A stretch of 18,611 nt of DNA from Paraphysomonas bandaiensis (GCA_965644295.1 CBFFRP010000226.1:1-18611), one strand, 5' to 3'; positions 1,131 through 15,898 are shown, numbered from the stretch's first letter. Numbers and translations: made by a program. Notes: generated by a model from the sequence alone, not told the origin.

Positions 1131-1698
1131 GACATACTGATATTGCACTAATACTTCATACCTAATCGTCTCCCTAGAGGTGGTACCTATAACCTCTACA
1201 TTTCCTACTGATAAGTATCCCTATTTATATTAAAATGTACCTATAGGCACTGCCTATATGCATCAATACTACCTATAGGTACTACCTAAAATATAATACC
1301 AATACGACCTGGAGGTACTATAAGTAACAATAATAAACACAGTATAATATGTATTGCAAAGTAGGAAATAATATAAAAGCAAGCAATAATGCAGATCTGT
1401 ATTATGAATGAAAAGACAAAGCATGTATTCAATTAAAATAAGACGGTATTCGTATTAACATATTACGAAGTAAAAGTTAACGGCAATTACTAATTAGAAC
1501 CTACTAATATACATACCACGACAAATCTGAACCAAAGCGTAATCTAGCTCCCAATCACCTGTGACCACGTGGCATTTCACATGCCTCAGTCACGTGTCTA
1601 TAGTAAGTGAAAAACTACTAACTACGGGATGAAGACAGAGCCGATAGAAGTATCAGAAACATATCATTATTACGCTACAGATTACTGAAGAACTAGCA

Positions 1699-1974
1699 CT
1701 AGGACAGGAGGTACAATTTCCCATAATCTGCCAACAGCTCTTCGCCGGCCGCAACTGCCCGAGTGGTCTGCACCCAGACCACGTCCAAGCCGGACTCATC
1801 TACTACAAATTCGCAGTTGAAGCGCCAGCCAGCAGCATGGTCAGAAGGATACACCGTGTTTATATACCCACCATGATTATGAGGCACCCGGGCCAAATAA
1901 GCTTGGGACCCCAGCGGCCAAAGGTAACCTATGTCCCGAGTGTCCCACACCTCTGGTAGAAGTCCAACACGCAC
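1699..1974 (-). CDS. SET-domain-like ORF (central and C-terminal part), antisense within the 5' LTR; true start uncertain
   Basis: NHGGYINT...NCEF...VWVQTTRAVAAGEELLADYG matches the SET-C signature (N..RFINHS..PN....A.R.I..GEEL..DY). GTG start only, with an in-frame TGA 4 codons upstream. Confidence 0.65.
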   Translation of the reverse strand: MRVGLLPEVWDTRDIGYLWPLGSQAYLARVPHNHGGYINTVYPSDHAAGWRFNCEFVVDESGLDVVWVQTTRAVAAGEELLADYGKLYLLS

Positions 1975-2222
1975 TGGCAGACTTCACCTCTTGCATCATA
2001 CGATGACGAGTGCAAGTAAGGAACAACTTTGCACAGTTGCCTATGTGCATCAAGTTGTCCCTCGGGGCATCGAACGGAGCGTTCCCACATACGCCTAGCA
2101 GCAGCCCTTTCACGGTAGGCATACCGATACCGATGGGACCTACGTAATAGAGAGCCCCGTCCCCTACGATTGCGAGGTTTAGGCTTAGTGGAGACCGCTG
2201 CTGGATCTGTAGTGGCAGACAT
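1929..2222 (-). CDS. Arg/Lys-rich 97-aa antisense ORF in the 5' LTR; possible N-terminal part of the SET-like protein
   Basis: ATG-initiated with a basic NLS-like stretch KPKPRNRRGR. Overlaps the SET frame and can be joined to it by a GT..AG intron (1974-2092) or a 1-nt frameshift near 1980. Confidence 0.4.
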   Translation of the reverse strand: MSATTDPAAVSTKPKPRNRRGRGSLLRRSHRYRYAYRERAAARRMWERSVRCPEGQLDAHRQLCKVVPYLHSSSYDARGEVCQCVLDFYQRCGTLGT

Positions 2223-3015
2223 TGTTTATGCAGCAATGGATATGATGTATGTATCTGATGTGGACATTGGTTCTTAGTCTGAGATAGTAGATGTAGAAAA
2301 AGCATCATACGGTATGCTGCACACTCACATACATGTTGGTCCATTGTAATACAGTAGCAGTACTCTGAATACGCAGTATTCAACGGCTAATTTACAAACT
2401 GGCGAGTGTGGTGTGTGGTGTCATCGCGAGTGTGGTGTGTTGTGCTGGTTCTATGTTGCATTGCTTTACAGCTCAGTGTTTTGTTAAGTGTTGTTCTGTT
2501 TGTACACTAGTGTTCTGACTTCACTGGAGGTGGGGTTTGCGCGGTGATTCTTGGAGGGAGTCACTAGTACAAGCTTGCAACGCTTGACATACTGTTTAGA
2601 GTAATAATCATCCTGTTCTCCTGCAATCAGACGTACATATAGCTCTGGTTAACTCATTGTGTTTGTTTCTGCTGCACAGCCTTGGTTATCAAACCTGGCT
2701 GTGTCACAGTAATTAATTACTTAAAAAAGCAGATCAGCGCTGATAGTAATTGTTACACATACAACTCATTTTGCAATATTTGCAACACTTGTCATTCTTG
2801 CACATTAGAATACTGAGCTTGGCCTTTATTAGCCTCCTCGTATTCGAATAGTCCTTAGAGTCTATAGATTGCATACCAGTGCAAGCTTAGGGATTAAGGA
2901 GTGATATCTTGCAGTGTTTGAGAATACATATCCGTGAGCGCGGACTCCGTTAGACTGCGCCGTTAAGAGTGTACCTTGGACACTGCAACAAACTCAATAT
3001 TTTGGAAAACTGCTC

Positions 3016-3236: not shown

Positions 3237-5039
3237 ATGTCTACTCCTAGTGGCAAAAAGTCCAGCAAGAAGTCGTCCACTGCCCCACTGCGTCCTAAAC
3301 CAGTGGTACAGGAGGACTCACCAGATAAAATAGATGAGAGTCAATACGAAGAAGCGCCCATGATGCCTTCACCTTCTGCCCCAGCATCCTCAGCAACCCA
3401 ACAGATTCTGGACTCAGTACAGGAGATCCAAGGCACCCTGGGACAAGTAGCCTTTGCGATATCCAACCTAGACAGTAGGGTACAAGCTCTGGAGAGTTCT
3501 AAGAGAGCAGATACACCTGATTCACCAGACACCCAGAGTGATGACACACCTGATGCATTCAGTAGCAAGGGCAGTAAAGCAAGTACCACACCCAGGGGAG
3601 TCACTAAGCGTGCTAAGAAAGACCGACCAAAACCCCGTTATTCCACTTTAGGAGATCTGGCTACATTCAGGAGATTGCCAGAGAAGAAAGAGCAACTGAG
3701 TGAGGAGAGCTCCGACTCAGAGCTTGAGGAAGAGGCAGAAGAACATTTGGGGCGTCTTGCCAGTGTTTTTGGAGAGAAGCGTCCAGGAAAGTTCTTCCGG
3801 AATTTGAAACGCAGCGCCAAGGTGGCCCAAGCTAAGACTGTCAATATAACTAGGCTTGAGAAGAAGTGTCACGTCAGGATTGAGACATTCAAACTTGGTA
3901 GAGTTTCAAGGGCGATCAAGGAGATTCTGGATTTCCAAGAAGAGGAAGAAACAGAAGTCCGCATCCAGAAAGTTTTATCTAGAAACCTGAAGGATCACTT
4001 GCGTTCCGTCTATGATATTCAACACGCAGAATTAGCTAGCATGGACATATCTGACCTCATGAGAATCGTAGCCCTAGAGACGAAAGTTTTCAGCTGTGTT
4101 GGGTTTTACAACGAGCTGAAAGAATCTCTCAGCCATATGAAGGTCATGGAGTGGGACAATGTCAACGCTGTCAATTTTGAAGCCTTCTATTTTCAACAAC
4201 TTCGTTTGATAGAATCCTTTAAAAGGATGTTGTCTATCATGTTGGAAAATGAAAGCAACAGGCGTTGGTGTCCACAGGCTGATGACAAGGAATACGGCCT
4301 TATTAGGCTATTTAAAACCCTGAACGACGTCACATATGTGAAATTTGTGCTAGGTTGTATTCCGAAGAAGAAGTTCGACTTTATGGAAGACTTCTTCAAA
4401 CTATATACGGAGGTACTGTTAGACCATTACCAGATCACGATTGCTTATAAACAGTTGCCCTTCAAAGCAACCGTGCAACATCAGGCGAAGTATGAGGAAT
4501 ACATGAAGCGCAAGCGTGAAATGTTTTCTAGACCTAAGCCTGGAGTGGCAAAGAATTCCACTAGCACCCACTCTTCTACCAGGTTATTTAACATGGAAGA
4601 GGAACAGGCTTCTTTTTCTTCAAATGAATTTTCTCATGATGAAGAAGATTTATGGGATGCCTATGGGGATACATGGAAAAGCAACAACCACAGTACCGAT
4701 GTTCCAACTGGCGGCAAACCTAATGGCGAGCCAGCGACCGAAACTTCTGAAGAGAAAGATACATCCGACTCAGAAGGAGCTTTGCAAGCTATGGATGGCC
4801 AGAATCCATCTCATAAACCCAAACAAGAGAAGTATGGGTGCATGAGAAAAATCATGTATGGCAAGTGCGACAAGAGTGATTGTCGTTATAGCCATAATCC
4901 TAGAGCTCTCGCCAATACCGCTTCGGAATTGGCTGAGAAATCCCAAGCTTATTTGAAGACCACTTCTTCAACTTCAGGGTCTCAGGATAAACCTCCTGCT
5001 ATTTTAAGGAGAGATCGCTTCGGCGACTCTCGTCCTTGA
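3237..5039 (+). CDS. gag: Gag-like polyprotein (600 aa) with a C-terminal CCCH zinc finger
   Basis: Intact ORF in the gag position. Low-complexity N-terminus with a short coiled-coil-like segment, helical-looking core, and C-x8-C-x4-C-x3-H at 4839-4895. Assigned as Gag by position rather than by a recognised capsid motif. Confidence 0.85.
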   Translation: MSTPSGKKSSKKSSTAPLRPKPVVQEDSPDKIDESQYEEAPMMPSPSAPASSATQQILDSVQEIQGTLGQVAFAISNLDSRVQALESSKRADTPDSPDTQSDDTPDAFSSKGSKASTTPRGVTKRAKKDRPKPRYSTLGDLATFRRLPEKKEQLSEESSDSELEEEAEEHLGRLASVFGEKRPGKFFRNLKRSAKVAQAKTVNITRLEKKCHVRIETFKLGRVSRAIKEILDFQEEEETEVRIQKVLSRNLKDHLRSVYDIQHAELASMDISDLMRIVALETKVFSCVGFYNELKESLSHMKVMEWDNVNAVNFEAFYFQQLRLIESFKRMLSIMLENESNRRWCPQADDKEYGLIRLFKTLNDVTYVKFVLGCIPKKKFDFMEDFFKLYTEVLLDHYQITIAYKQLPFKATVQHQAKYEEYMKRKREMFSRPKPGVAKNSTSTHSSTRLFNMEEEQASFSSNEFSHDEEDLWDAYGDTWKSNNHSTDVPTGGKPNGEPATETSEEKDTSDSEGALQAMDGQNPSHKPKQEKYGCMRKIMYGKCDKSDCRYSHNPRALANTASELAEKSQAYLKTTSSTSGSQDKPPAILRRDRFGDSRP

Positions 5040-5054: not shown

Positions 5055-8000
5055 ATGATTGAGGACCTAGAAGAACATGTGATCAGTGTTTGTGATGGGA
5101 ATGATGATTGTGATTATCTCCCAGAGGCTAAAACATTGAATACTACTTCTTCAAAGGTCCATTTCAAGGATGGAGCTAAGCTGTATGCTTCATATCCTTC
5201 AGCCAAGAAATTTTCATCAGCACATACCGTAGGTAGAGTAATTATAGACAAGAAGTTCGGAGTGGAAGAATTAGTGAAAGTTTTATGTGACACAGGAGCC
5301 CTATCCGCTAACTACGTAGCACGTGATCTTGTGGATAGATTGCGTACCAAGCTAGAACCTAGCAGGTTCTACAAGGTCAAACACCGTGTGGTTTTGGCAG
5401 ACAGTAGAACCGTAAAGGATCTTGACGAAGGGGTTCGATTGAACCTAGTGTTTACCGATCCCAAGAGTCACACTTACCAGTACACTGGTGAGTTCATCGT
5501 GATCGACATGTCATCTAATGACATTATTTTGGGACTACCAGCCCTGACTGGGAAGCTATACCCTTTCATGTGTGCTGTCATGGAGCAGGCCCATGAGAAT
5601 CATCTCGAAGATTCGGCTCAAGGGAACCATAATTTGAGTGCCCTACAAAATGAGGACATGGAATCCAGAGAGGAACACCGACGTCCCTGGAGTAAAGCGA
5701 ATGATGCTATTGCTCCAGAAGATAACGAGACTGAGTTACCCGTTCAATTCAAAGATGCTTTGACATTCCTCGGAAAGTCTAGAGAGGAAGCTCTTAACGA
5801 CTACTATGAACAAATAGAAACTCACGTCAGTCAGGAGATGAAACAAGAGACCAACATTATGGATCTCTTATCTTCCAAAGCTGAGAAGGTATTCGTGCCT
5901 GATGAGTGGACAGGAGTCCGAGGTGTTGACCCTTTGACTCTTAAGTGGAAAGAAACTTTACCTGAAAGAATGAAACCCAGAGCCAGGCCGATCAACCCTA
6001 AGCTCTGGGAAGCATCCGAAAAGGAGTTCAGGAGACTATGTGGTTATTTTTACCAGAAGAGCAGATCTCCTTGGGCTTCATGCTTGGTGGTTGCTCCCAA
6101 GGCTACTCCACCTTATATCCGATTCTGCGGCGATTATGTTAATATCAACAAGCACATGCAAGTGGGTAATTATTCAATTCCCAATGTCAAGCATGAATTG
6201 GACAAGATCATCAATTTCCCATTGTATATGGACATCGACTTGACCAACGCTTTCCATCAGATACCTCTAGCGGAAGAAACATCAGAGAGGCTTTCTATCC
6301 AGACGCCATGGGGCCAATATGCGCCAAAGTTCATGCCAGAAGGTATTGCGCCGGCTACTGGAATTCTGCAAGAGGTAGTCAGGGAAATATTTGAAGATTT
6401 TTCTGACTGGGCCATTGTAATATTTGACAACATGTTGATATTGGCCAACGACCCTCAAGATGCGTATCAGAAATTTGAGAAAGTGATTGACAGATGCATC
6501 GAGAGGAATCTCAAACTGAAAATGCCAAAGAGTTGGCTTGGATTTAGAAAAGTAGACTTCTTCGGATACGTATGCAGACACAAATCCTATGAAGTCAATC
6601 CTGAGAAGAAGGAAGCCCTAGGCAAAATCCCAATGCCTACCAACACCAAACAAGCGAGGTCTCTGCTTGGCAAGGGCGTGTTCTTTTCCAGTTTTACCCC
6701 TAGATATTCAGACTTGGTTGCTCATCTCACGGATTTGACCAAATCGAAATTCAATTGGGACAAGACTACGTGGCGGCACGATTATGAGGCTGAATATCGT
6801 CGCTTCATAAAAGGCCTGCAAGATTCCTGCGAATTGTTCTACCCAGACTACAATTTGGAGTGGACACTGCGTACTGACGCTAGTGAGCTAGGAATCGGCT
6901 CGGTGCTTCTGCAGAAAAAGATTCTCGCAGATGGAACAGAGCAGTTGCAACCCATTGCCTTCCTGTCAAAGAAGTTTTCAGCTCAGGCTCAGAAATGGGC
7001 TACGATAGAGCAAGAAGCTTATGGTATTTACTACAGTGTCAAGCACTTAGCGTACTATTTGATTGGGAAGCAGTTCACTATAGAGACTGACCACAATAAT
7101 CTCTTGTGGATGGAGTCGTCTGAAGTACCTAAGATCACAAGATGGAGAATTTTCTTGCAATCTTTCAACTTCAGCATTAAACACATATCGGGTGCCAAGA
7201 ATTGGTTAGCAGATTGGTTATCTCGGGAGCATCAAGTTGCGGCGTTGTCCGGTATGTTCTTAGATGAAGACTATGCCGATGCCTACTTCCTTGGAGAGGA
7301 CTGCACTGAGGATGAATTTTTTAACTTCTTGGGCAATTTTATGAACCCAGAAGACAGGGAAGTATCTCCTCATGCGCAAAGTTCAGTCACTCCCGAGGAT
7401 GCCTTGCAACAAGTACATAATGCCCGAGTTGGACATCTCGGTGGGCGAGCCACTTGGATTCGACTTAATAAGCAATTCCCCGGCCATGGCATTCCTTACA
7501 AAGTAGTCGAAGACTTCATTGCGAAGTGTCCAAACTGTGTTAAGACTAGATTGGCGATGAAAGAAGCGCTGATCCCTATAGTCCGAAACCTTAAGCCTCC
7601 GAGCGCTCGGAGTGCTATTGGTATTGATGCGGTAGAAATCACACCCCATGGTGCTGATGGATACACGCACATTAATGTCGTAGTCAACCTGTACACCAAG
7701 TTAGTTTATCTTGAGCCAGTCAAAGGAGTGACTGCCCTCAACTTGGCAAACACGGTATGGAAGTATTGGAGTTACTACGGACACACTGATCTTATCATCT
7801 CAGATCAGGGTCCTGACCTAACTTCCGATCTTTTCAAACAACTGACTGAATATATGGGCGTCCGACACACCTTCAGCATAGCCAACAGGCATGCTAATGG
7901 TTGTGAACGCATCATCGGTGAGGTGGTCCGACATTTGCGTGCCCTAGTATATGAAAACAGCAAGCGTGTAGAACGAAAGGATGTTTTTGAGGATCCCAGC

Positions 8001-9020
8001 TGGATACCCAGCGCTCAATACATTCTGAATTCAGAAGTCTCATCCGAGACGGGGTACTCACCCTTTGAGCTCACTTTTGGCTCTAATGATCTGGAATATT
8101 TAACTATGAATATACAGACTTTGCCTGAGCGTGCACACGCCAGACTGACTGCTCTTAATGAACAGCTAGAAGGCCTACGGGCGGCTTCCAAAACTTACCA
8201 GCAGCAGTTAGCGAGTGAACGTGCTGGGGAGGGAGTTCACCCGGACAAGCAGAACCGATATCAACCGGGCGATTTCATTTTATTTGACAAAGGCGCCAAG
8301 GTTCATCCCAAGATGTCACATCGATACATGGGACCTTTTGTTGTTAAGACCCAGTACAAAAATGACATTGATTGTCAGCACCTTGCTACAGGGCAAGTGG
8401 TACGTGTTTCAGTGACAGACGTCAAACTGTTTCCAGGTGATAGAGAAACTGCGTACAGCATGGCTCTACGAGACCAGGATCAGCATGTCATTGACAAGAT
8501 TCTCTACTATCGGGGTGACAGAGAGTCACGCTCCACTTTGATTTTTACTGTGAGATTTCAGGATGGTGATGTCAGAGAAGTGCCTTATAGCAAGGACCTT
8601 TTTGACTCAGTGCCTTACGCGGACTTTTGTTCCAGCAAACGGTACCTCTACCACCTGATTTATCCAGCGGAGGGTGCCAAGAAATATATCTCGGACATCC
8701 GACGCCAGTCTATCACTCAGTTCAAACCCGGTGACCATGCATATGTTGACCTACGCATTTATGGCGACGTATGGTACGACGGACTGCAGTTACCAGACTC
8801 CCACTTACTGACCTATGTAGCTCCGATCCAGTTCACACACTGGTATCATCGAAGCTCTAGGAGAGTATTATCCGTCAAGGATCTTCTCACTCTCCGCACT
8901 TACCGTTATGACAACTACCTCGTGCATTGTTTCGTTCACCCTGAACTAGACACTACCACTATGGTACTAGTCGACAAGGACTTGGCTACACGCTACCCTC
9001 AAGTCCTTGAGTCCGTTTAG
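5055..9020 (+). CDS. pol: Pol polyprotein (1321 aa): aspartic protease, reverse transcriptase, RNase H, integrase, chromodomain-like and extra C-terminal domain
   Basis: Protease LCDTGA and IILGLP. RT RFCGDY, DLTNAFHQI, MPEGI, IFDN. RNase H TDAS, EQE, TDH, ADWLSR. Integrase H-x5-H..CPNC, IDAV/SDQG/ERI (DDE) and YMGPF (GPY/F). Chromo-like HVIDKILYYR..FTVRF. Confidence 0.97.
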   Translation: MIEDLEEHVISVCDGNDDCDYLPEAKTLNTTSSKVHFKDGAKLYASYPSAKKFSSAHTVGRVIIDKKFGVEELVKVLCDTGALSANYVARDLVDRLRTKLEPSRFYKVKHRVVLADSRTVKDLDEGVRLNLVFTDPKSHTYQYTGEFIVIDMSSNDIILGLPALTGKLYPFMCAVMEQAHENHLEDSAQGNHNLSALQNEDMESREEHRRPWSKANDAIAPEDNETELPVQFKDALTFLGKSREEALNDYYEQIETHVSQEMKQETNIMDLLSSKAEKVFVPDEWTGVRGVDPLTLKWKETLPERMKPRARPINPKLWEASEKEFRRLCGYFYQKSRSPWASCLVVAPKATPPYIRFCGDYVNINKHMQVGNYSIPNVKHELDKIINFPLYMDIDLTNAFHQIPLAEETSERLSIQTPWGQYAPKFMPEGIAPATGILQEVVREIFEDFSDWAIVIFDNMLILANDPQDAYQKFEKVIDRCIERNLKLKMPKSWLGFRKVDFFGYVCRHKSYEVNPEKKEALGKIPMPTNTKQARSLLGKGVFFSSFTPRYSDLVAHLTDLTKSKFNWDKTTWRHDYEAEYRRFIKGLQDSCELFYPDYNLEWTLRTDASELGIGSVLLQKKILADGTEQLQPIAFLSKKFSAQAQKWATIEQEAYGIYYSVKHLAYYLIGKQFTIETDHNNLLWMESSEVPKITRWRIFLQSFNFSIKHISGAKNWLADWLSREHQVAALSGMFLDEDYADAYFLGEDCTEDEFFNFLGNFMNPEDREVSPHAQSSVTPEDALQQVHNARVGHLGGRATWIRLNKQFPGHGIPYKVVEDFIAKCPNCVKTRLAMKEALIPIVRNLKPPSARSAIGIDAVEITPHGADGYTHINVVVNLYTKLVYLEPVKGVTALNLANTVWKYWSYYGHTDLIISDQGPDLTSDLFKQLTEYMGVRHTFSIANRHANGCERIIGEVVRHLRALVYENSKRVERKDVFEDPSWIPSAQYILNSEVSSETGYSPFELTFGSNDLEYLTMNIQTLPERAHARLTALNEQLEGLRAASKTYQQQLASERAGEGVHPDKQNRYQPGDFILFDKGAKVHPKMSHRYMGPFVVKTQYKNDIDCQHLATGQVVRVSVTDVKLFPGDRETAYSMALRDQDQHVIDKILYYRGDRESRSTLIFTVRFQDGDVREVPYSKDLFDSVPYADFCSSKRYLYHLIYPAEGAKKYISDIRRQSITQFKPGDHAYVDLRIYGDVWYDGLQLPDSHLLTYVAPIQFTHWYHRSSRRVLSVKDLLTLRTYRYDNYLVHCFVHPELDTTTMVLVDKDLATRYPQVLESV

Positions 9021-9172: not shown

Positions 9173-9199
9173 AAAAAAAAAAAAAAAGGGGAGGCGGGG
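9173..9199 (+). other. Polypurine tract (A15 followed by GGGGAGGCGGGG)
   Basis: Purine run ending 3 nt before the 3' LTR start at 9203. Confidence 0.9.
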
Positions 9200-9341
9200 C
9201 AATGTGACCACGTGGCATTTCACATGCCTCAGTCACGTGTCTATAGTAAGTGAAAAACTACTAACTACGGGATGAAGACAGAGACGATAGAAGTATCAGA
9301 AACATATCATTATTACGCTACAGATTACTGAAGAACTAGCA

Positions 9342-9617
9342 CTAGGACAGGAGGTACAATTTCCCATAATCTGCCAACAGCTCTTCGCCGGCCGCAACTG
9401 CCCGAGTGGTCTGCACCCAGACCACGTCCAAGCCGGACTCATCTACTACAAATTCGCAGTTGAAGCGCCAGCCAGCAGCATGGTCAGAAGGATACACCGT
9501 GTTTATATACCCACCATGATTATGAGGCACCCGGGCCAAATAAGCTTGGGACCCCAGCGGCCAAAGGTAACCTATGTCCCGAGTGTCCCACACCTCTGGT
9601 AGAAGTCCAACACGCAC
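9342..9617 (-). CDS. Second copy of the SET-domain-like antisense ORF (3' LTR)
   Basis: Identical translation to 1699-1974. Confidence 0.65.
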   Translation of the reverse strand: MRVGLLPEVWDTRDIGYLWPLGSQAYLARVPHNHGGYINTVYPSDHAAGWRFNCEFVVDESGLDVVWVQTTRAVAAGEELLADYGKLYLLS

Positions 9618-9865
9618 TGGCAGACTTCACCTCTTGCATCATACGATGACGAGTGCAAGTAAGGAACAACTTTGCACAGTTGCCTATGTGCATCAAGTTG
9701 TCCCTCGGGGCATCGAACGGAGCGTTCCCACATACGCCTAGCAGCAGCCCTTTCACGGTAGGCATACCGATACCGATGGGACCTACGTAATAGAGAGCCC
9801 CGTCCCCTACGATTGCGAGGTTTAGGCTTAGTGGAGACCGCTGCTGGATCTGTAGTGGCAGACAT
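9572..9865 (-). CDS. Second copy of the basic 97-aa antisense ORF (3' LTR)
   Basis: Identical translation to 1929-2222. Confidence 0.4.
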   Translation of the reverse strand: MSATTDPAAVSTKPKPRNRRGRGSLLRRSHRYRYAYRERAAARRMWERSVRCPEGQLDAHRQLCKVVPYLHSSSYDARGEVCQCVLDFYQRCGTLGT

Positions 9866-11563
9866 TGTTTATGCAGCAATGGATATGATGTATGTATCTG
9901 ATGTGGACATTGGTTCTTAGTCTGAGATAGTAGATGTAGAAAAAGCATCATACGGTATGCTGCACACTCACATACATGTTGGTCCATTGTAATACAGTAG
10001 CAGTACTCTGAATACGCAGTATTCAACGGCTAATTTACAAACTGGCGAGTGTGGTGTGTGGTGTCATCGCGAGTGTGGTGTGTTGTGCTGGTTCTATGTT
10101 GCATTGCTTTACAGCTCAGTGTTTTGTTAAGTGTTGTTCTGTTTGTACACTAGTGTTCTGACTTCACTGGAGGTGGGGTTTGCGCGGTGATTCTTGGAGG
10201 GAGTCACTAGTACAAGCTTGCAACGCTTGACATACTGTTTAGAGTAATAATCATCCTGTTCTCCTGAAATCAGACGTACATATAGCTCTGGTTAACTCAT
10301 TGTGTTTGTTTCTGCTGCACAGCCTTGGTTATCAAACCTGGCTGTGTCACACACCTGCTAAGAAGCAGAAGCATTGTGCACTTCAGATGTCTTCACCGCC
10401 AATCTGAGTTCATTCAGTTTTAGCTTCCAAGGTAATGATAACATTTGTTCGTCCAAGCCATCTTACACCGATCTCACACCGAGATAACTTCTGGGGTACG
10501 ATACTGATACAGAGGTATATATATAGGAAATAATTTACCCAAAATATTATTTCTATTAATTGCATGCATTAATAATACTAATATGAACGCTGCCCCCCAT
10601 TGATGTATATTGAAGATGTTAACTGTCACATTACTTGAATCCTTGAATTATCGGGAGAACTTCACAGGATGCACACTAAGCATACATTCTGCAATATAAC
10701 GGCTCAAGCAGTATTTCATCCACCTGTAAGGGCCCTCTTCCACTTCACTGAGGGTAATAACCCACACATGAATCAGTTGTCTCAAGCGGTTAAAAGTCAT
10801 CCTACTGGTCTTGAACAGCATGAAGCTTGCGGTACAGTGAAGTCATGTCAGTCCATTAACGACTCCATCAATCGTCCTTTGTTTTAATCTGCAGGTGGGG
10901 TCATAATTTCACCCCACAATAGACTCTCTGTTATTATGTGGGTCAGTATTCCAGTGTAGCAGTTGCAGTGTATACTTCCATAGGAATACGTACTGGCATT
11001 ACCCATATATACTACCCTATAGGGGGGCACGTACATATCACATCAAGGGTGAATGGATATTATATACTCGAGGTGCACGAGTGTTCATACCAGACTCAGT
11101 GGGGAATCAATTGCCGCATGCAATACGTGGTATGCAGGATTGTATTTACGTATAACCTGGATATTAGAGGGGTTTTGGGTTCTTGAATGCTAAAATACAT
11201 AAAAGTGGCGGTATACTGTTTTTGTATGGGTATTTAGGTAGAAAGTAAAACGTAGGATGTAGTGTACTATTAGTATGCGGTTATACGTTGCTCCTAGGTT
11301 GCTGTGTGTATTCAGTTTATAGAATAAACACGTTTCTGTGGGTGGTTGTGACGTTGCAGGGTGTTGTGATGTTGTTGAGGAGTAGGAGTGAGTGTAACAT
11401 GTATGCTATATGGTGTTATGCACTTGTTTAGGCTTAACCGAAGTGCTTGGTGCCAACGATCTTGTTGCACTGGCGGTGTTACCTGCGTGGTGATTTCTGG
11501 CGGAAATCATTAACTAGGCATTAGGTTATTGCTAGAGCAGTCAAACATTAATAATACATTGTT

Positions 11564-13022
11564 TTACACTTGTGTGTTTTGTGTGGTATACCTGTACTGC
11601 GAGCCGTGATTTCGGTTTTCAAACCGGGTTGCGCCATACAGCGGGTGTCCCTGCCAGAACTGGAATCGGAGTCGTAGTAGGTTAAGCATGAGTAGGAAGT
11701 CTTCGGTGTCCATGTAGTTTTGTGGCGGGGAGGGCTCTGGCCTGTGAGTTGGGGGAGCGGAGGGAATTCCTCATGCGGGTGAGTGTACGCCTCAGTGTTT
11801 GGATACGTGTGGCAGTGATGCCTGCAGTGAGGCATAGGGCCAACAAGCGTTGCACCAGTGACAATAATGCGGTGGTATCCTCTTCGCTAGAAAGGTGCAC
11901 AGGGTTGTATTTTCCTGGTGCTGTTGACCTCAGAATTTGATGAGCTGCTGCCACCGAGCAGAAGCCACGTCCGGGGGTGGCGGCGTAATCCGTATCGCAG
12001 TTGAACGAGGTGACGTGTATGTAGTTGGAACTGTCGTTGACAGTATTGAAGAGTGTGGGCCAGGCTGTTGGGTCCGGAGAGGTCATGATGGTGGTGTGGA
12101 GTTGGTGTAGGAGATCCTCTCGCAGGGGATCCTCTCGCAGGGACGCTGCTATTTTGCCGGTGTTGTCGTAGGCAGCCCAGGTGTTGGTGAGTAAATTGGT
12201 GAAGGGGACTGTGCTGTCCTGTTGTGGGGGCTTAGCCTCCAGCTGGTTAGCTTTTTGGCAGTCGTGGGGGAAGTGGGGCCAGTCGTGGTGGACAGAGGAG
12301 TGAAGGTATTATCTGTGGTGCCAGACCTGTTCGGTTTCAGGAGCTGGGGTGTGGGAGTGATACAGTGAGTTGAGGACAGAGTCGCTGAGCCGTGGTTCCT
12401 CTGTGGAGCGATCGACGAATTGATCTCTTGGAGTTTGGAATAGCGACAGCTGAATGTGTCGACTTTCTGTTCGTTGACGCCCTTTGTCGTCAACTGAGGT
12501 GCCAGTTTCAATATGGAGATCAAAACAAAGAGGCGCTGAGAGCATGCATGAATCAGCGGCGACATTCTGACCCATACCCTGCCTGACCTCGTACCCAGCA
12601 GGTCTACCAAGGGCGAACGCTCGGATTACTCTGCTCGCCGTAGGAGCAGGTAAATCTGAGCAAGTTCGCGCATCCGCGGCTGCCCTGAAAGTAGCGAGGT
12701 CTTGCGGGGTAGGGAGTGGAATTGGAAACCCCAATTCATGGATTAGGTAATGTATAATTCCAAAGAACGCCGTCGTATCGTCTTGCATTTATAGGTTACT
12801 GACCACTAGAGTTCTGTATTCCATAGCTGGTGCGAAGCTTCTCCATTCCAAGAACGTGCGAGTAGATGGAAGCTGAAGTCTGGGCACGTCGGCTTTGGAT
12901 TTCTTGAAATCCGATAGGGCGCTCTTAACATGCGCATCATTGTCCATCAGTTGATGGGAGGGAGGGAGAACAAACTTCGAGGTGTAAGTTCTTTTGTTAG
13001 AGGGAGTGGCTCCACGTTGCAT
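11564..13022 (-). pseudogene. Decayed ORF (about 485 codons), probably transposon-derived, with an OTU-like cysteine protease motif
   Basis: ORFs 12789-13232, 12309-12788 and 11682-12086 share one frame, separated only by single TAA codons (12789-12791, 12309-12311); 12087-12308 is also open. Contains TPGRGFCSVAAAHQIL, then after a frameshift near 11728, YMDTEDFLLMLNLLRLRFQFW. Confidence 0.55.
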
Positions 13023-14253
13023 TGTACCAGGTGGTTGTTGTAAGGAGGATGAATTGAGTAAGTATGCTTCCAAAGGGTGGTTATATAGGAGGTGCACATA
13101 TAAGTGGGAAAGGCGGTGGTGATAGTGTTGTGTGTAGTCGACGAGATTGACTGGAAGAGAACAGCGTGATACGCTGTATATTGTGTAGAGTGACTGTATT
13201 CGCGTATACCACGTATAGAATACAGTAGTCATTCAATGAGATGTGTAGCCTGTAGGAATGATAGGTAAGCCGGGAGAGGTGGGGGGTTGTTTGGTGAGTG
13301 CACCATGTATAGGCCATGTGGAGTTGGCTTGTGCGGTTGCCAAGAAATGGTCCTGTCTTACAAAGTAGCGGGGTCGATGGAGTACAAAGGTGTTAGGGAA
13401 TGAACAAGTGCACCTTTTTCGAGTGCCTACCCGTACGAGCCATGCGCGGAGTGGTTGTAACCGTAGAGAACGGTGTGTGAGACAGATACGTCTACAAGGG
13501 AGATGTCCGATAGGAGCAGTCAGCGCTGCATTGGTGCAGGCACTTGGTTTAACTGAAGGCGTTAGGTAAGAGGAAAGTTGCAAAGCCAAGTTATTGAACT
13601 GGAAACATGTACAACATGGTAGGACAAGATATTTGTCGGCAGTGTGGTGTGTTACAAAATTCATCCATGCTTGCAGAGAGGTGGACAATCTGAGCCCTGA
13701 CCCACTGATGTGACACAACCAAGGTCTCCATAGAGACATTTAGCTTGTAGCTAGCTAATAAAGGTGTAACTTTTTGTTGGACGGTGTTTACCAGGAGAGG
13801 AAGAGGAATTTTTTTTTCACACTTCTAACTATTCCGTTGTGCATGATAGTTATGTTCTATATTGTGATTCATAATTCTCACTCTACTGTGTTCATCACTT
13901 TACACTCTAATAATCACAACATTGTTTTCCTATTACTAAGATCATTTCTTTATTCTATCTGAGCGACAAATTTTCACTTCCTAGAATTATTGCTGTCCTA
14001 TTCTATCAAGGATGTAGCTTTTAATATGTACTGCTCGCGGTTGCATATAGCAGCGTACACATTACACATCAATTGGTATCAACACACCACCCAAGGTTCG
14101 ATTAAAACGTTATGCACGTGAAAGTGACGAGCGCATTATTAAAAAGCGGACGAAACACAATACTCCTACTCTAACGGGTGGATAATCGGGGTAATGTTAC
14201 CACCGGCTGCACAGTACAGACAATACAAAGTATAAAAGACCTCGGGCGATTCT

Positions 14254-15898
14254 TTATAAAGTAAACGAGGCATATATTAGCAAGCCGATGATCAAATATG
14301 AAGCGATAATGGCAGTGTAGTTCATGGTTTTCATTAGCAGAATGAAAGGTGCAGATGCGGGGAGGCGCTCTTTACCTTCGTCTGCAAATTTAACCACAGT
14401 GGATGACACAGACGGTTTCATGTTTCTCTTACCACATGTGAACTGACTTCTGGAGGAATTCATACATTCCTTGGAGCTATCCGCTAGGGTTTGTACACTC
14501 GCCGTGGCGTTCAAAAAAGGCTCTGCAAAAGTCTTGACAAACCAAAAATTGCAGCATATATACGAGAGAAAAGTTCGACCTTGACCATGAGGGGTCGCCA
14601 TCAGCTCTCGAACATACTCGGGGTTTCGGTGCCGCACAATAGCATCTTTGTAGTTTTCAGCCATTTGCTGGAGAATTTTATTTCTCTCGAACCGCCAAGC
14701 GCTCTCTCGAGCATTTTTACTCATCTGCCGGCGAAGCTTGTCATCTTGCACCAGATTCTTAGTAGCCTGGTAGAATCCCTCCAGGTCACCAGGAGCACAA
14801 GTATAACCATTGAATCCATTCTGCACCAAGTGCCCACTGCACGTATTAACTACAACCGATACACACCCACTTGCTAGAGCTTCTAGGGTAACGTTACCGA
14901 AAGTCTCCACGTCGCTGGGAAAGAGGAGAATGTCTGCAGACGCATACGCCTCCGCGAGTGCGACGCCAGATAGCCATCCGGCACAGCTCACATTCGGCAT
15001 TTGGCTGAGTGTTGTCTCGAAGGTCCCGTGTCCAACTACAATGCCTTTCGCGTTGATACCCTCACTATGCAGACGCTGCATTACGTTTGTCCAAATATCT
15101 GGACGCTTCTCTGGAACTAACCGTCCCACCCAGAGAACAAGAACATCTTGCTCGGAAATGCCTCTCGAGGCACGGAACTCAGATGACCTGCGGTCAGGTG
15201 TGAAAAGCTTGAGGTCCACACCTCGTCCCCACTCGAGCAGCTGGGTATTCTTTCCAAAGCCTTCACGTTTCAGCTTATCAAGCATAAATGGTGTCTATAT
15301 CAGCCAATTGTAAGACAAAGTAAGTGGGTTAGTGTGACTGACTTACCGGTACATACACAGCAGGCATTTGTTCATAGAAACCTTTCAAATACACCATAAA
15401 CCCTGGTTTCAATACCCACTCAAGGAAGTAGTATTTTAAGTAGTCAGAGTAGTTGCTGTGCCATGTAGCCATATATCCAACGTTGTTCCTCTGGCACCAC
15501 CGGATGCCATCTAGACTAACTAAATCAGGAACGGTGAAATGAACGCAGTTGGGGTTGAATTCTTCAATTTCACGCAGAGTATTAGCACCTAAACTACCGC
15601 CAAATGCATACCCCTCCCCCGCAGCTGTAAACGGAATCTTAATTCCAGGGATAATGATGATGTCCTTAGTCTGCTCCTCAGTGAACTCATCTGGTACCGT
15701 GGATGCGATTTTGACCACCGCTCCACGGGCTCTTAAATGTGCTTCCAGTCGACGAATCGTCAGCGTCACACCATCCAACACAAAATAGCACGCAGTGAAT
15801 ATCAGCACCCGCAACTCATCGTCTCGAGGCCGTGTGTGTAATTTCACCTCTGAGAGGGCTCCCATTTCCATCTGCTCTTCAGTACTTGGAGCACTCAT
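14254..15898 (-). CDS. GT4-family (GT-B) glycosyltransferase, PimB/MgtA/SQD2-like, 530 aa, two exons (15898-15347 and 15294-14254)
   Basis: LDGVTLTIRRL, WHSNY, WGRGVD..LF.P, VGRLVPEK, ETFGNVTLEALASG (E-x7-E). The spliced junction reads VYVP|TPFMLDKL in frame. Hydrophobic C-terminal tail. Confidence 0.93.
15295..15346 (-). other. 52-nt spliceosomal intron in the glycosyltransferase gene
   Basis: GTAAGT donor, CACTAAC branch-point-like motif, TAG acceptor; removal restores the frame. Confidence 0.9.

Follow-up and report, generated by a model that had tools for sequence, protein, structure and literature searches.

A conserved SET-domain gene lies antisense within the U3 region of a Gypsy retrotransposon lineage and is broken in both LTRs of a young element

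The long terminal repeats (LTRs) of a Ty3/Gypsy retrotransposon lineage harbor a SET-domain gene that is nested in antisense orientation within the U3 region, and both the existence of this gene and its conservation are well supported. At least three diverged Gypsy families share this antisense placement within the LTR; the gene is an accessory gene of the lineage, and the LTRs described here carry a dead copy of it. LTRs are textbook non-coding regulatory repeats, and a selected protein gene placed antisense in U3 would change what an LTR, even a solo LTR, can be.

The window (the whole stretch of DNA that was analyzed, 18,611 nt) contains a young Ty3/Gypsy LTR retrotransposon whose gag and pol ORFs are intact. 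Its parts are as follows:

1556-1559 (left) and 10352-10355 (right), no strand: target-site duplication (TSD) CACC, 4 bp, adjoining the LTR ends
1560-2708, plus strand: 5' LTR, 1149 bp, TGTGACC...GTGTCACA; the 211-bp-deleted variant of a 1360-bp LTR
2223-2626, no strand: putative divergent promoter region plus R, the poly(A) site being placed by homology to a sister copy
2506-2563, no strand: conserved block within the promoter region, 58 bp, 81% between LTR families A and B
2709-2720, plus strand: palindrome GTAATTAATTAC, 12 nt long, directly after the 5' LTR end, at the primer-binding-site position
3237-5039, plus strand: gag-like ORF, 600 aa, with a CCCH knuckle, uninterrupted
5055-9020, plus strand: pol ORF, 1321 aa, with RT, RNase H, and integrase in Ty3/Gypsy order, uninterrupted
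9175-9202, plus strand: polypurine tract, directly before the 3' LTR
9203-10351, plus strand: 3' LTR, 1149 bp, with the same broken SET gene inside

The first-pass annotation of this DNA had described a recently inserted Gypsy element, and that description holds, given two LTRs with TG..CA termini that differ at only two positions (1641 and 2624), the flanking CACC duplication, and intact gag and pol. The same annotation had placed the LTRs at 1699-2222 and 9342-9865; those repeats are real, but they are only parts of the true LTRs at 1560-2708 and 9203-10351. No tRNA-type primer-binding site was recognised after the window's 5' LTR, where the perfect palindrome GTAATTAATTAC is found instead, and the palindrome may point to an unusual priming mode. 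Its counterpart in a distant family is GTAAATTTAC (L065, element-sense position about 1790). Pfam recognised no chromodomain in the C-terminal 321 residues of pol and so lends no support to the idea that the window element might combine a chromatin "reader" with a "writer". About 4 kb from the element lies a host gene for a GT4-family glycosyltransferase (Glyco_transf_4 plus Glycos_transf_1; window 14254-15898, minus strand), divided between two ORFs with a gap of 43 bases (15286-15328); this length is not divisible by three and would suit a short intron. At 11000-14000, GC skew is strongly positive (0.25-0.28), and minus-strand ORFs of 130-170 aa follow one another in shifting frames; Pfam recognised none of them, and the stretch could represent either a decayed repeat or a gene that has escaped annotation.

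Each LTR of the window element contains two minus-strand ORFs, which are the halves of one 244-aa gene split by a frameshifting 211-bp deletion:

1699-1974 (identical 3' LTR twin at 9342-9617), minus strand: SET C-terminal remnant, 91 aa, GTG start, approximately residues 163-244 of the intact protein
1929-2222 (3' LTR copy at 9572-9865), minus strand: SET N-terminal remnant, 97 aa, ATG at 2222, residues 1 to approximately 94, then out of frame
1941-1946 (9584-9589 in the 3' LTR), no strand: junction of the 211-bp deletion, with the 6-bp microhomology TGTCCC; the joint is also present in public sequencing runs

The deletion takes out approximately 70 residues (roughly 94-164), corresponding to the first half of the SET core with its GxG and YxG motifs, and shifts the reading frame. 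What remains upstream is the basic N-terminal helix and the pre-SET part, which overlaps the 91-aa ORF in another frame, while the downstream remnant retains the motifs GGYINTV, NCEF, and GEELLADYG. A further difference of the window copy is an R-to-G change, at 1869, within the otherwise conserved GRYxNT motif. As had been reported from the first inspection, a minus-strand frame ends in GYINT..NCEF..; the ORF at 1699-1974 reads GYINTV..NCEF..VWVQTTRAVAAGEELLADYG at its end, as does its twin at 9342-9617. The accompanying view of a 91-aa protein as the gene product was not upheld, as this frame begins with GTG, lacks the N-terminal half of the SET core, and is the remnant of a 244-aa gene. Against the Pfam SET model PF00856, the fragment scores 18.4 bits (E 0.003), below the gathering score of 22.4 bits, over profile positions 71-105, the last third of the domain. 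This weak match is not due to chance, because the piece represents the C-terminus of a 244-aa ORF of which other LTR copies have the complete form. The window element therefore encodes no functional SET enzyme, since the out-of-frame deletion breaks the gene in both LTRs, and there is no complete SET domain in the window. An intron was considered as an explanation of the 211-bp gap and rejected: the ORF of the long form runs through without interruption, a length of 211 does not divide by 3, neither strand offers GT..AG ends, and the 6-bp microhomology marks a deletion instead.

The intact gene is found in the window's own assembly (62.6 Mb in 669 contigs, with at least seven silicon-transporter genes over the Pfam cut-off, as would suit a probable diatom), where about 20 copies of the window LTR are present, several of which are 211 bases longer, the additional sequence being at LTR position 382. 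LTRs of this 1360-bp form have the two ORFs fused into a single 244-aa minus-strand ORF (e.g., L010:1048-1782, minus strand) that occupies LTR positions 140-874 of 1360, antisense and wholly inside U3. Six LTRs carry the SET ORF uninterrupted (two on contig C70 and one each on C218, C496, C589, and C242); it is absent in intact form from the other 14 of the approximately 20. The sequences analyzed throughout are naturally occurring copies, used unaltered. The deletions fall into four classes, all wholly inside the SET ORF and all with microhomology at the junction:

LTR positions 382-592: the window's type
LTR positions about 155-440: C153 (twice) and C196
LTR positions 376-691: C309
LTR positions 553-850: C645 (twice), C378 (twice), and the 3' LTR of C589

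The window-type deletion is present at four sites whose flanks are all different, namely the window element, C36 and C564 (where the LTR directly follows a polypurine tract and is hence a 3' LTR), and a solo LTR on C120. The deletion is common to the two LTRs of the window element and hence predates the insertion, and its presence at four independent sites indicates that a SET-less variant has transposed repeatedly and that the gene is dispensable in cis. The same follows from the copying of ORF-confined deletions to more than one LTR or site. Dispensability in cis together with long-term conservation fits a trans-acting product, and the SET product probably acts in trans. Two expectations voiced at the outset, that the gene is duplicated with the LTR and would persist in solo LTRs, were both borne out: the SET ORF lies antisense and wholly inside the LTR, in both LTRs, and the C120 solo LTR, flanked by the TSD GGTG, carries a SET remnant. 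The element on C589 (L056, L012, L019) combines a full-length 5' LTR bearing an intact SET ORF with a 3' LTR of the 553-850 class, a mismatch that implies deletion after insertion or recombination between variants. Head-to-tail arrays with shared LTRs (LTR-body-LTR-body-LTR) are seen on C70 (L052, 1-10000) and L065, and in the second C70 body an internal deletion joins the LTR directly to mid-gag.

Judged from profile comparisons and a structural model, the intact LTR ORF is a genuine SET domain, for which catalysis is a prediction. Taken alone, the 244-aa protein scores 21.2 bits against PF00856, just under the 22.4-bit threshold, and an exhaustive homologue search with this ORF collected 101 representative clusters at E<=1e-3. 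Among 58 aligned relatives, PF00856 is matched by 55 (best E 1e-13) and the PR-domain model PF21549 by 29 (best E 5e-7); there is no linked zinc-finger array, and the window family itself gave no PR-domain match. Against solved structures, the family profile retrieves the SET methyltransferases EHMT2, KMT2C, KMT5A, LegAS4, and EZH2 (E about 1e-8), and phmmer with the single protein against PDB sequences gives marginal KMT5A matches (E about 0.08). Folding of the single sequence without an alignment was unusable (pLDDT 36.7), and an AlphaFold2 model of an intact sister copy with the 58-sequence alignment reached a pLDDT of 93.4 and a pTM of 0.84. The best 50 Foldseek matches listed for this model in the PDB are all SET lysine methyltransferases (E about 2e-7), including MLL1/3, SET7/9, SETD8, LegAS4, and NSD1, and the best structural matches among predicted viral proteins (BFVD) are giant-virus SET proteins. 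VIA-align gives Z scores of 10.3-11.8 over 112-141 aligned residues for Set1/COMPASS, MLL1/3/4, SETD8, SET7/9, and ATXR5; the substrate is not readable from the structure, because these scores are tied across H3K4, H4K20, H3K27me1, and H3K36 enzymes.

Nearly invariant in the alignment are Y135-x-G137, N192, N206, and G230-E-E-L-L-x-D-Y237. We take these positions to correspond to the classical SET motifs, N192 being the Asn of "NHS", on the basis of the alignments with PDB sequences and profiles combined with the known layout of SET7/9 and SETD8. The His of NHS is replaced by Thr throughout the family (RYxNT), and the GxG motif reads GKG in the family consensus and QQG in the window's family. 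An insert of approximately 20 residues precedes RYxNT, there is no post-SET region, and the conserved N-terminal extension of approximately 95 residues includes a very basic helix. The C-terminal SET signature noticed in the window thus belongs to a family with an intact 244-aa homologue, 55 of 58 relatives matching PF00856, and a confidently modeled SET fold, and the reported change of NHS to NTV, of a divergent or PR-type, proves to be family-wide, with the PR model matched by half of the relatives (29 of 58). On the Pfam model and predicted fold, to which the original suggestion had pointed, the 91-aa piece and the single intact protein both fall below threshold, but the intact ORF with its alignment is predicted to adopt a SET fold.

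The position of the gene is conserved well beyond the window's own family (family A). Across families, the pol proteins are 64-84% identical and the SET proteins 41-58%. Family B, which relative to family A is 83.7% identical in pol, 52% in gag, and 54-58% in SET, is represented by a complete element on contig C599 with 1432-bp LTRs (3498-4921 and 11395-12826, 98.4% identical), both of which contain the minus-strand SET ORF. Tara Oceans contigs of this family have in common a block of exactly 1431 bp around SET and differ in both flanks (three different flanks), one running on into pol and the others into unrelated DNA. In family F (SET 41-45% identical; pol about 64-73% over the integrase and C-terminal parts), two contigs have the SET ORF downstream of pol, and a third has it upstream of gag. 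The gag-side contig has a polypurine tract and TGTGACC on one side of SET and GTGTCATA with the palindrome-like GTAAATTTAC on the other, and these termini define a 1487-bp LTR. Family A metagenome contigs carry an identical SET protein on both the gag side and the pol side, and C599a, C491, C206, and P0011 likewise show pol followed by a convergent SET. When the LTRs of family A are compared with those of family B, nucleotide similarity is left only at the termini, in parts of the SET coding sequence, and in the 58-bp block that corresponds to window 2506-2563. Four further loci (L039, L043, L048, and L049) offered no readable element context. On one metagenome contig, a fragment with a DUF7869 domain (L032:602-892, E 4e-13) adjoins a family B LTR, and the region around that LTR appears repeat-rich.

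Comparisons of the coding sequences indicate that the SET gene is under purifying selection. A codon model fitted to 11 natural sequences (221 codons) gave an omega of 0.113, with a log-likelihood of -4680.7 versus -4849.8 at omega=1, with saturation of synonymous sites along the long branches. For the pair that behaves best, family B versus a sequence from MMETSP (66% amino acid identity), dN is 0.23 and dS about 2, and distant pairs within family A have pN/pS ratios of 0.3-0.5 (Fisher p 0.006-0.16, most <0.05, the pairs being non-independent). Frame conservation and dN/dS, proposed from the start as a gauge of function, came out as intact ORFs across families and an omega of 0.11 rather than a value of about 1. 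At the same time, SET is only 54% identical between families A and B versus 84% for pol, so that its divergence is similar to that of gag and much faster than that of pol. Such a pace would fit either an arms race or weak constraint.

Evidence for transcription comes from several sources. The MMETSP transcriptome contig L040 (915 nt) contains a complete SET ORF encoding a protein 52% identical to that of the LTR, with 104 nt upstream and 97 nt downstream, and ends in AAAAAA, 16 nt after a AATAATGAT motif, this terminal run being only six bases long and possibly genomic. A second 915-nt contig, an independent one from Logan belonging to family B, starts at the same -104 position and stops well inside the LTR. 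The MMETSP contig has the appearance of a separate SET-sense mRNA of 0.9 kb, possibly with a poly(A) tail, and together these sequences suggest a compact antisense unit of approximately 0.9 kb within U3, divergent from the sense promoter region. A candidate poly(A) signal for this unit can be pointed to in the window:

1666-1676, minus strand: GTAATAATGAT motif, 30 nt past the SET stop codon, a candidate antisense poly(A) signal

The GTAATAATGAT motif also precedes the observed sense poly(A) site and the terminal A-run of L040. In the more general form GTAATAAT(C/G)AT, the motif is found on both LTR strands (window 2599-2626, plus; 1666-1676, minus), the plus-strand occurrence lying about 17-25 nt before the poly(A) addition site in a cDNA contig of a sister copy, and it may be the poly(A) signal used in the source organism. 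That contig bears 22 non-templated A residues where window 2626 would align, a point that is read as the R/U5 border of the sense element RNA. The LTR is likewise present in poly(A)-selected and cDNA marine metatranscriptomes, where RNA of family A consists of unstranded contigs only, which sense element RNA (with U3-R at its 3' end) could explain; among family A contigs in public runs, none ends at the predicted antisense start. The depth of LTR versus pol contigs in poly(A) RNA (about 45-190 versus 1-10) is suggestive and was set aside as evidence, because contig depth cannot rank regions and the 553-850 variant adds a high-depth joint. In one cDNA contig, 50 nt with GT..AG ends on the plus strand are missing immediately before the SET start codon (L052:8134-8185 of a sister copy, LTR 898-949), which could reflect either a short intron in the sense strand or a further length variant.

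No close host paralogue of the LTR SET was found in the assembly, in which SET matches above 37% identity are multi-copy or adjoin element genes, and the weak matches fall in giant LINE-like ORFs that have SET upstream of an apurinic-type endonuclease. These are represented by an open frame of 1960 aa on C566 (L057, 1-7000) and one of at least 2629 aa on C644 (L059, 1-10000). The C566 ORF has two SET domains, of which the N-terminal one is of the same subtype as the LTR SET (hhalign probability 99.5%, E 2e-22) and the second, further downstream, is of a different, "NDPL" type. In another example, a 15-kb metagenome contig (Ga0308003_1000687; L072, 994-7693) encodes DUF6570, Helitron_like_N, and a PIF1 helicase, followed on the same strand by a 237-aa SET ORF that is 31% identical to the LTR SET family. 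A search for the loci of relatives with nine sequences returned four loci, and all members of the SET clade with readable surroundings are located in or beside a mobile element. The initial idea of a captured gene has accordingly been narrowed: recent capture from the host is unlikely, there being no close paralogue and the readable closer homologues all residing in mobile elements. The occurrence of the same SET clade in LTR, LINE-like, and Helitron elements points to a recurrent, general strategy rather than a one-off capture.

Taken as a whole, the best explanation, and one that seems somewhat probable on balance, is that the antisense U3 SET gene of this lineage has its own transcription unit and encodes a trans-acting nuclear lysine methyltransferase that benefits the element. 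The gene would form a small unit transcribed divergently from the element's promoter region, with polyadenylation about 50 nt past the SET stop codon and still inside the LTR; as the unit lies wholly within the LTR, every LTR, including solo LTRs, could express SET. The product would be a nuclear lysine methyltransferase working in trans on histones at or around the element's copies, and its most likely benefit would be a mark that counteracts or steers host silencing. Window-type copies would then be free-riders on protein supplied by intact copies, and lineages that lose the SET gene altogether would presumably not last. A broader version of this proposal, which we regard as possible and hold only tentatively, is that the SET clade is confined to mobile elements, those of diatoms and marine protists related to them, and has been taken up repeatedly (in the Gypsy U3, as a LINE-like N-terminal domain, and as a Helitron passenger) as a trans-acting epigenetic counter-defence, with a histone mark that would protect the copies against silencing by the host, a shared good with recurrent SET-deleted free-riders.

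Among the alternatives, the enzyme could instead write a repressive or targeting mark, either for self-limitation of copy number or to create or recognise heterochromatic "safe havens" for integration, in place of an anti-silencing role. The viral protein vSET represses host transcription through H3K27 methylation, and the elements described here form tandem arrays and nested clusters, a pattern that integration into repeat-rich regions would produce; the sequence, however, does not tell the two directions apart, with structural matches tied among H3K4, H4K20, H3K27me1, and H3K36 enzymes, and we consider a repressive mark unlikely. Slightly less likely still is a protein that is made but catalytically inactive and serves for binding or as a decoy, whether it occupies histone tails or titrates a host silencing complex. 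The family-wide change of the NHS His to Thr, the degenerate GxG of family A, and the sub-threshold Pfam score would all be in keeping with such a role, as would the existence of PR/SET proteins without measurable activity. Nevertheless, purifying selection has preserved the Tyr of GEELLxDY, YxG, the two Asn residues, and the fold, and activity is possible in PR-type domains that have RYVN(C/A) instead of NHS, as in PRDM9. It is improbable that the substrate is a non-histone protein, be it Gag or integrase of the element itself or a restriction factor of the host. SET7/9 and SETD8, the closest structural classes, have many non-histone substrates, and the same SET clade is fused directly to LINE-like polyproteins, but the basic N-terminal helix points, weakly, to nucleic-acid or nuclear targeting. 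Finally, a passive captured gene fragment without function is very improbable and largely refuted by the selection results: although the window copy is broken and most copies in the assembly carry deletions, intact ORFs of 230-276 aa persist in families with pol down to about 64% identity, omega is 0.11, LTR position and orientation are conserved, and a transcript with a complete ORF exists.

If the favored reading of a trans-acting methyltransferase is correct, a retrotransposon lineage with its own candidate SET enzyme would provide a direct handle on the interplay of mobile elements and chromatin silencing in diatoms, in which the histone-mark biology of transposons is little explored. The presence of intact and deleted copies side by side likewise offers a natural system for the study of public goods and cheaters among transposons.

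A literature search, conducted outside the Repbase Reports, turned up no account of SET genes located in LTRs or carried by Gypsy elements of diatoms, and the known systems that come closest each share one part of the arrangement. The superantigen gene (sag) of MMTV is a complete coding gene in U3 that is present in both LTRs; the LTR SET gene resembles it in lying whole within U3 and being duplicated in both LTRs. The sag gene, however, is in sense orientation and encodes an immune modulator of a vertebrate retrovirus, whereas the gene described here is an antisense SET gene with an apparent promoter and poly(A) signal of its own. Antisense accessory proteins are also known from retroelements, including the extra ORFs of plant Ty3/Gypsy elements and the retroviral HBZ and ASP, and the LTR SET gene is similar in being a retroelement accessory protein encoded antisense. 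Those ORFs occupy the internal region (from pol to the 3' LTR, or opposite env/pX), whereas the SET ORF lies wholly in U3, and none of them is known to have a SET domain. Chlorovirus vSET and giant-virus SET proteins are likewise small, parasite-encoded SET proteins without pre-SET or post-SET zinc clusters, but they are only 11-22% identical to the LTR SET, which has in addition an N-terminal extension of approximately 95 residues and a 20-residue insert before RYxNT.

With respect to function, retrotransposons are reported to have acquired cytosine DNA methyltransferases in the elements themselves (PMC5890265). These enzymes and the VANDAL anti-silencing protein resemble the LTR SET as element-encoded epigenetic writers or anti-silencing factors that presumably act on the element's own chromatin. 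The retrotransposon enzymes differ in methylating cytosine, and none is described as located in an LTR; here a lysine-type SET protein is encoded within one. Finally, SET accessory genes are on record for HarbingerS DNA transposons, for Helitrons, which have captured them, and for Plavaka (PAG2) (Kojima and Jurka 2014, cited as reference 9 of PMC12730594; bioRxiv 10.1101/2025.02.11.637652). As in the lineage described here, a mobile element has its own SET accessory gene; in contrast, HarbingerS, Helitrons, and Plavaka are class II (DNA) elements that carry the gene in the element body, whereas here it is carried by an LTR retrotransposon, antisense and inside the LTR.
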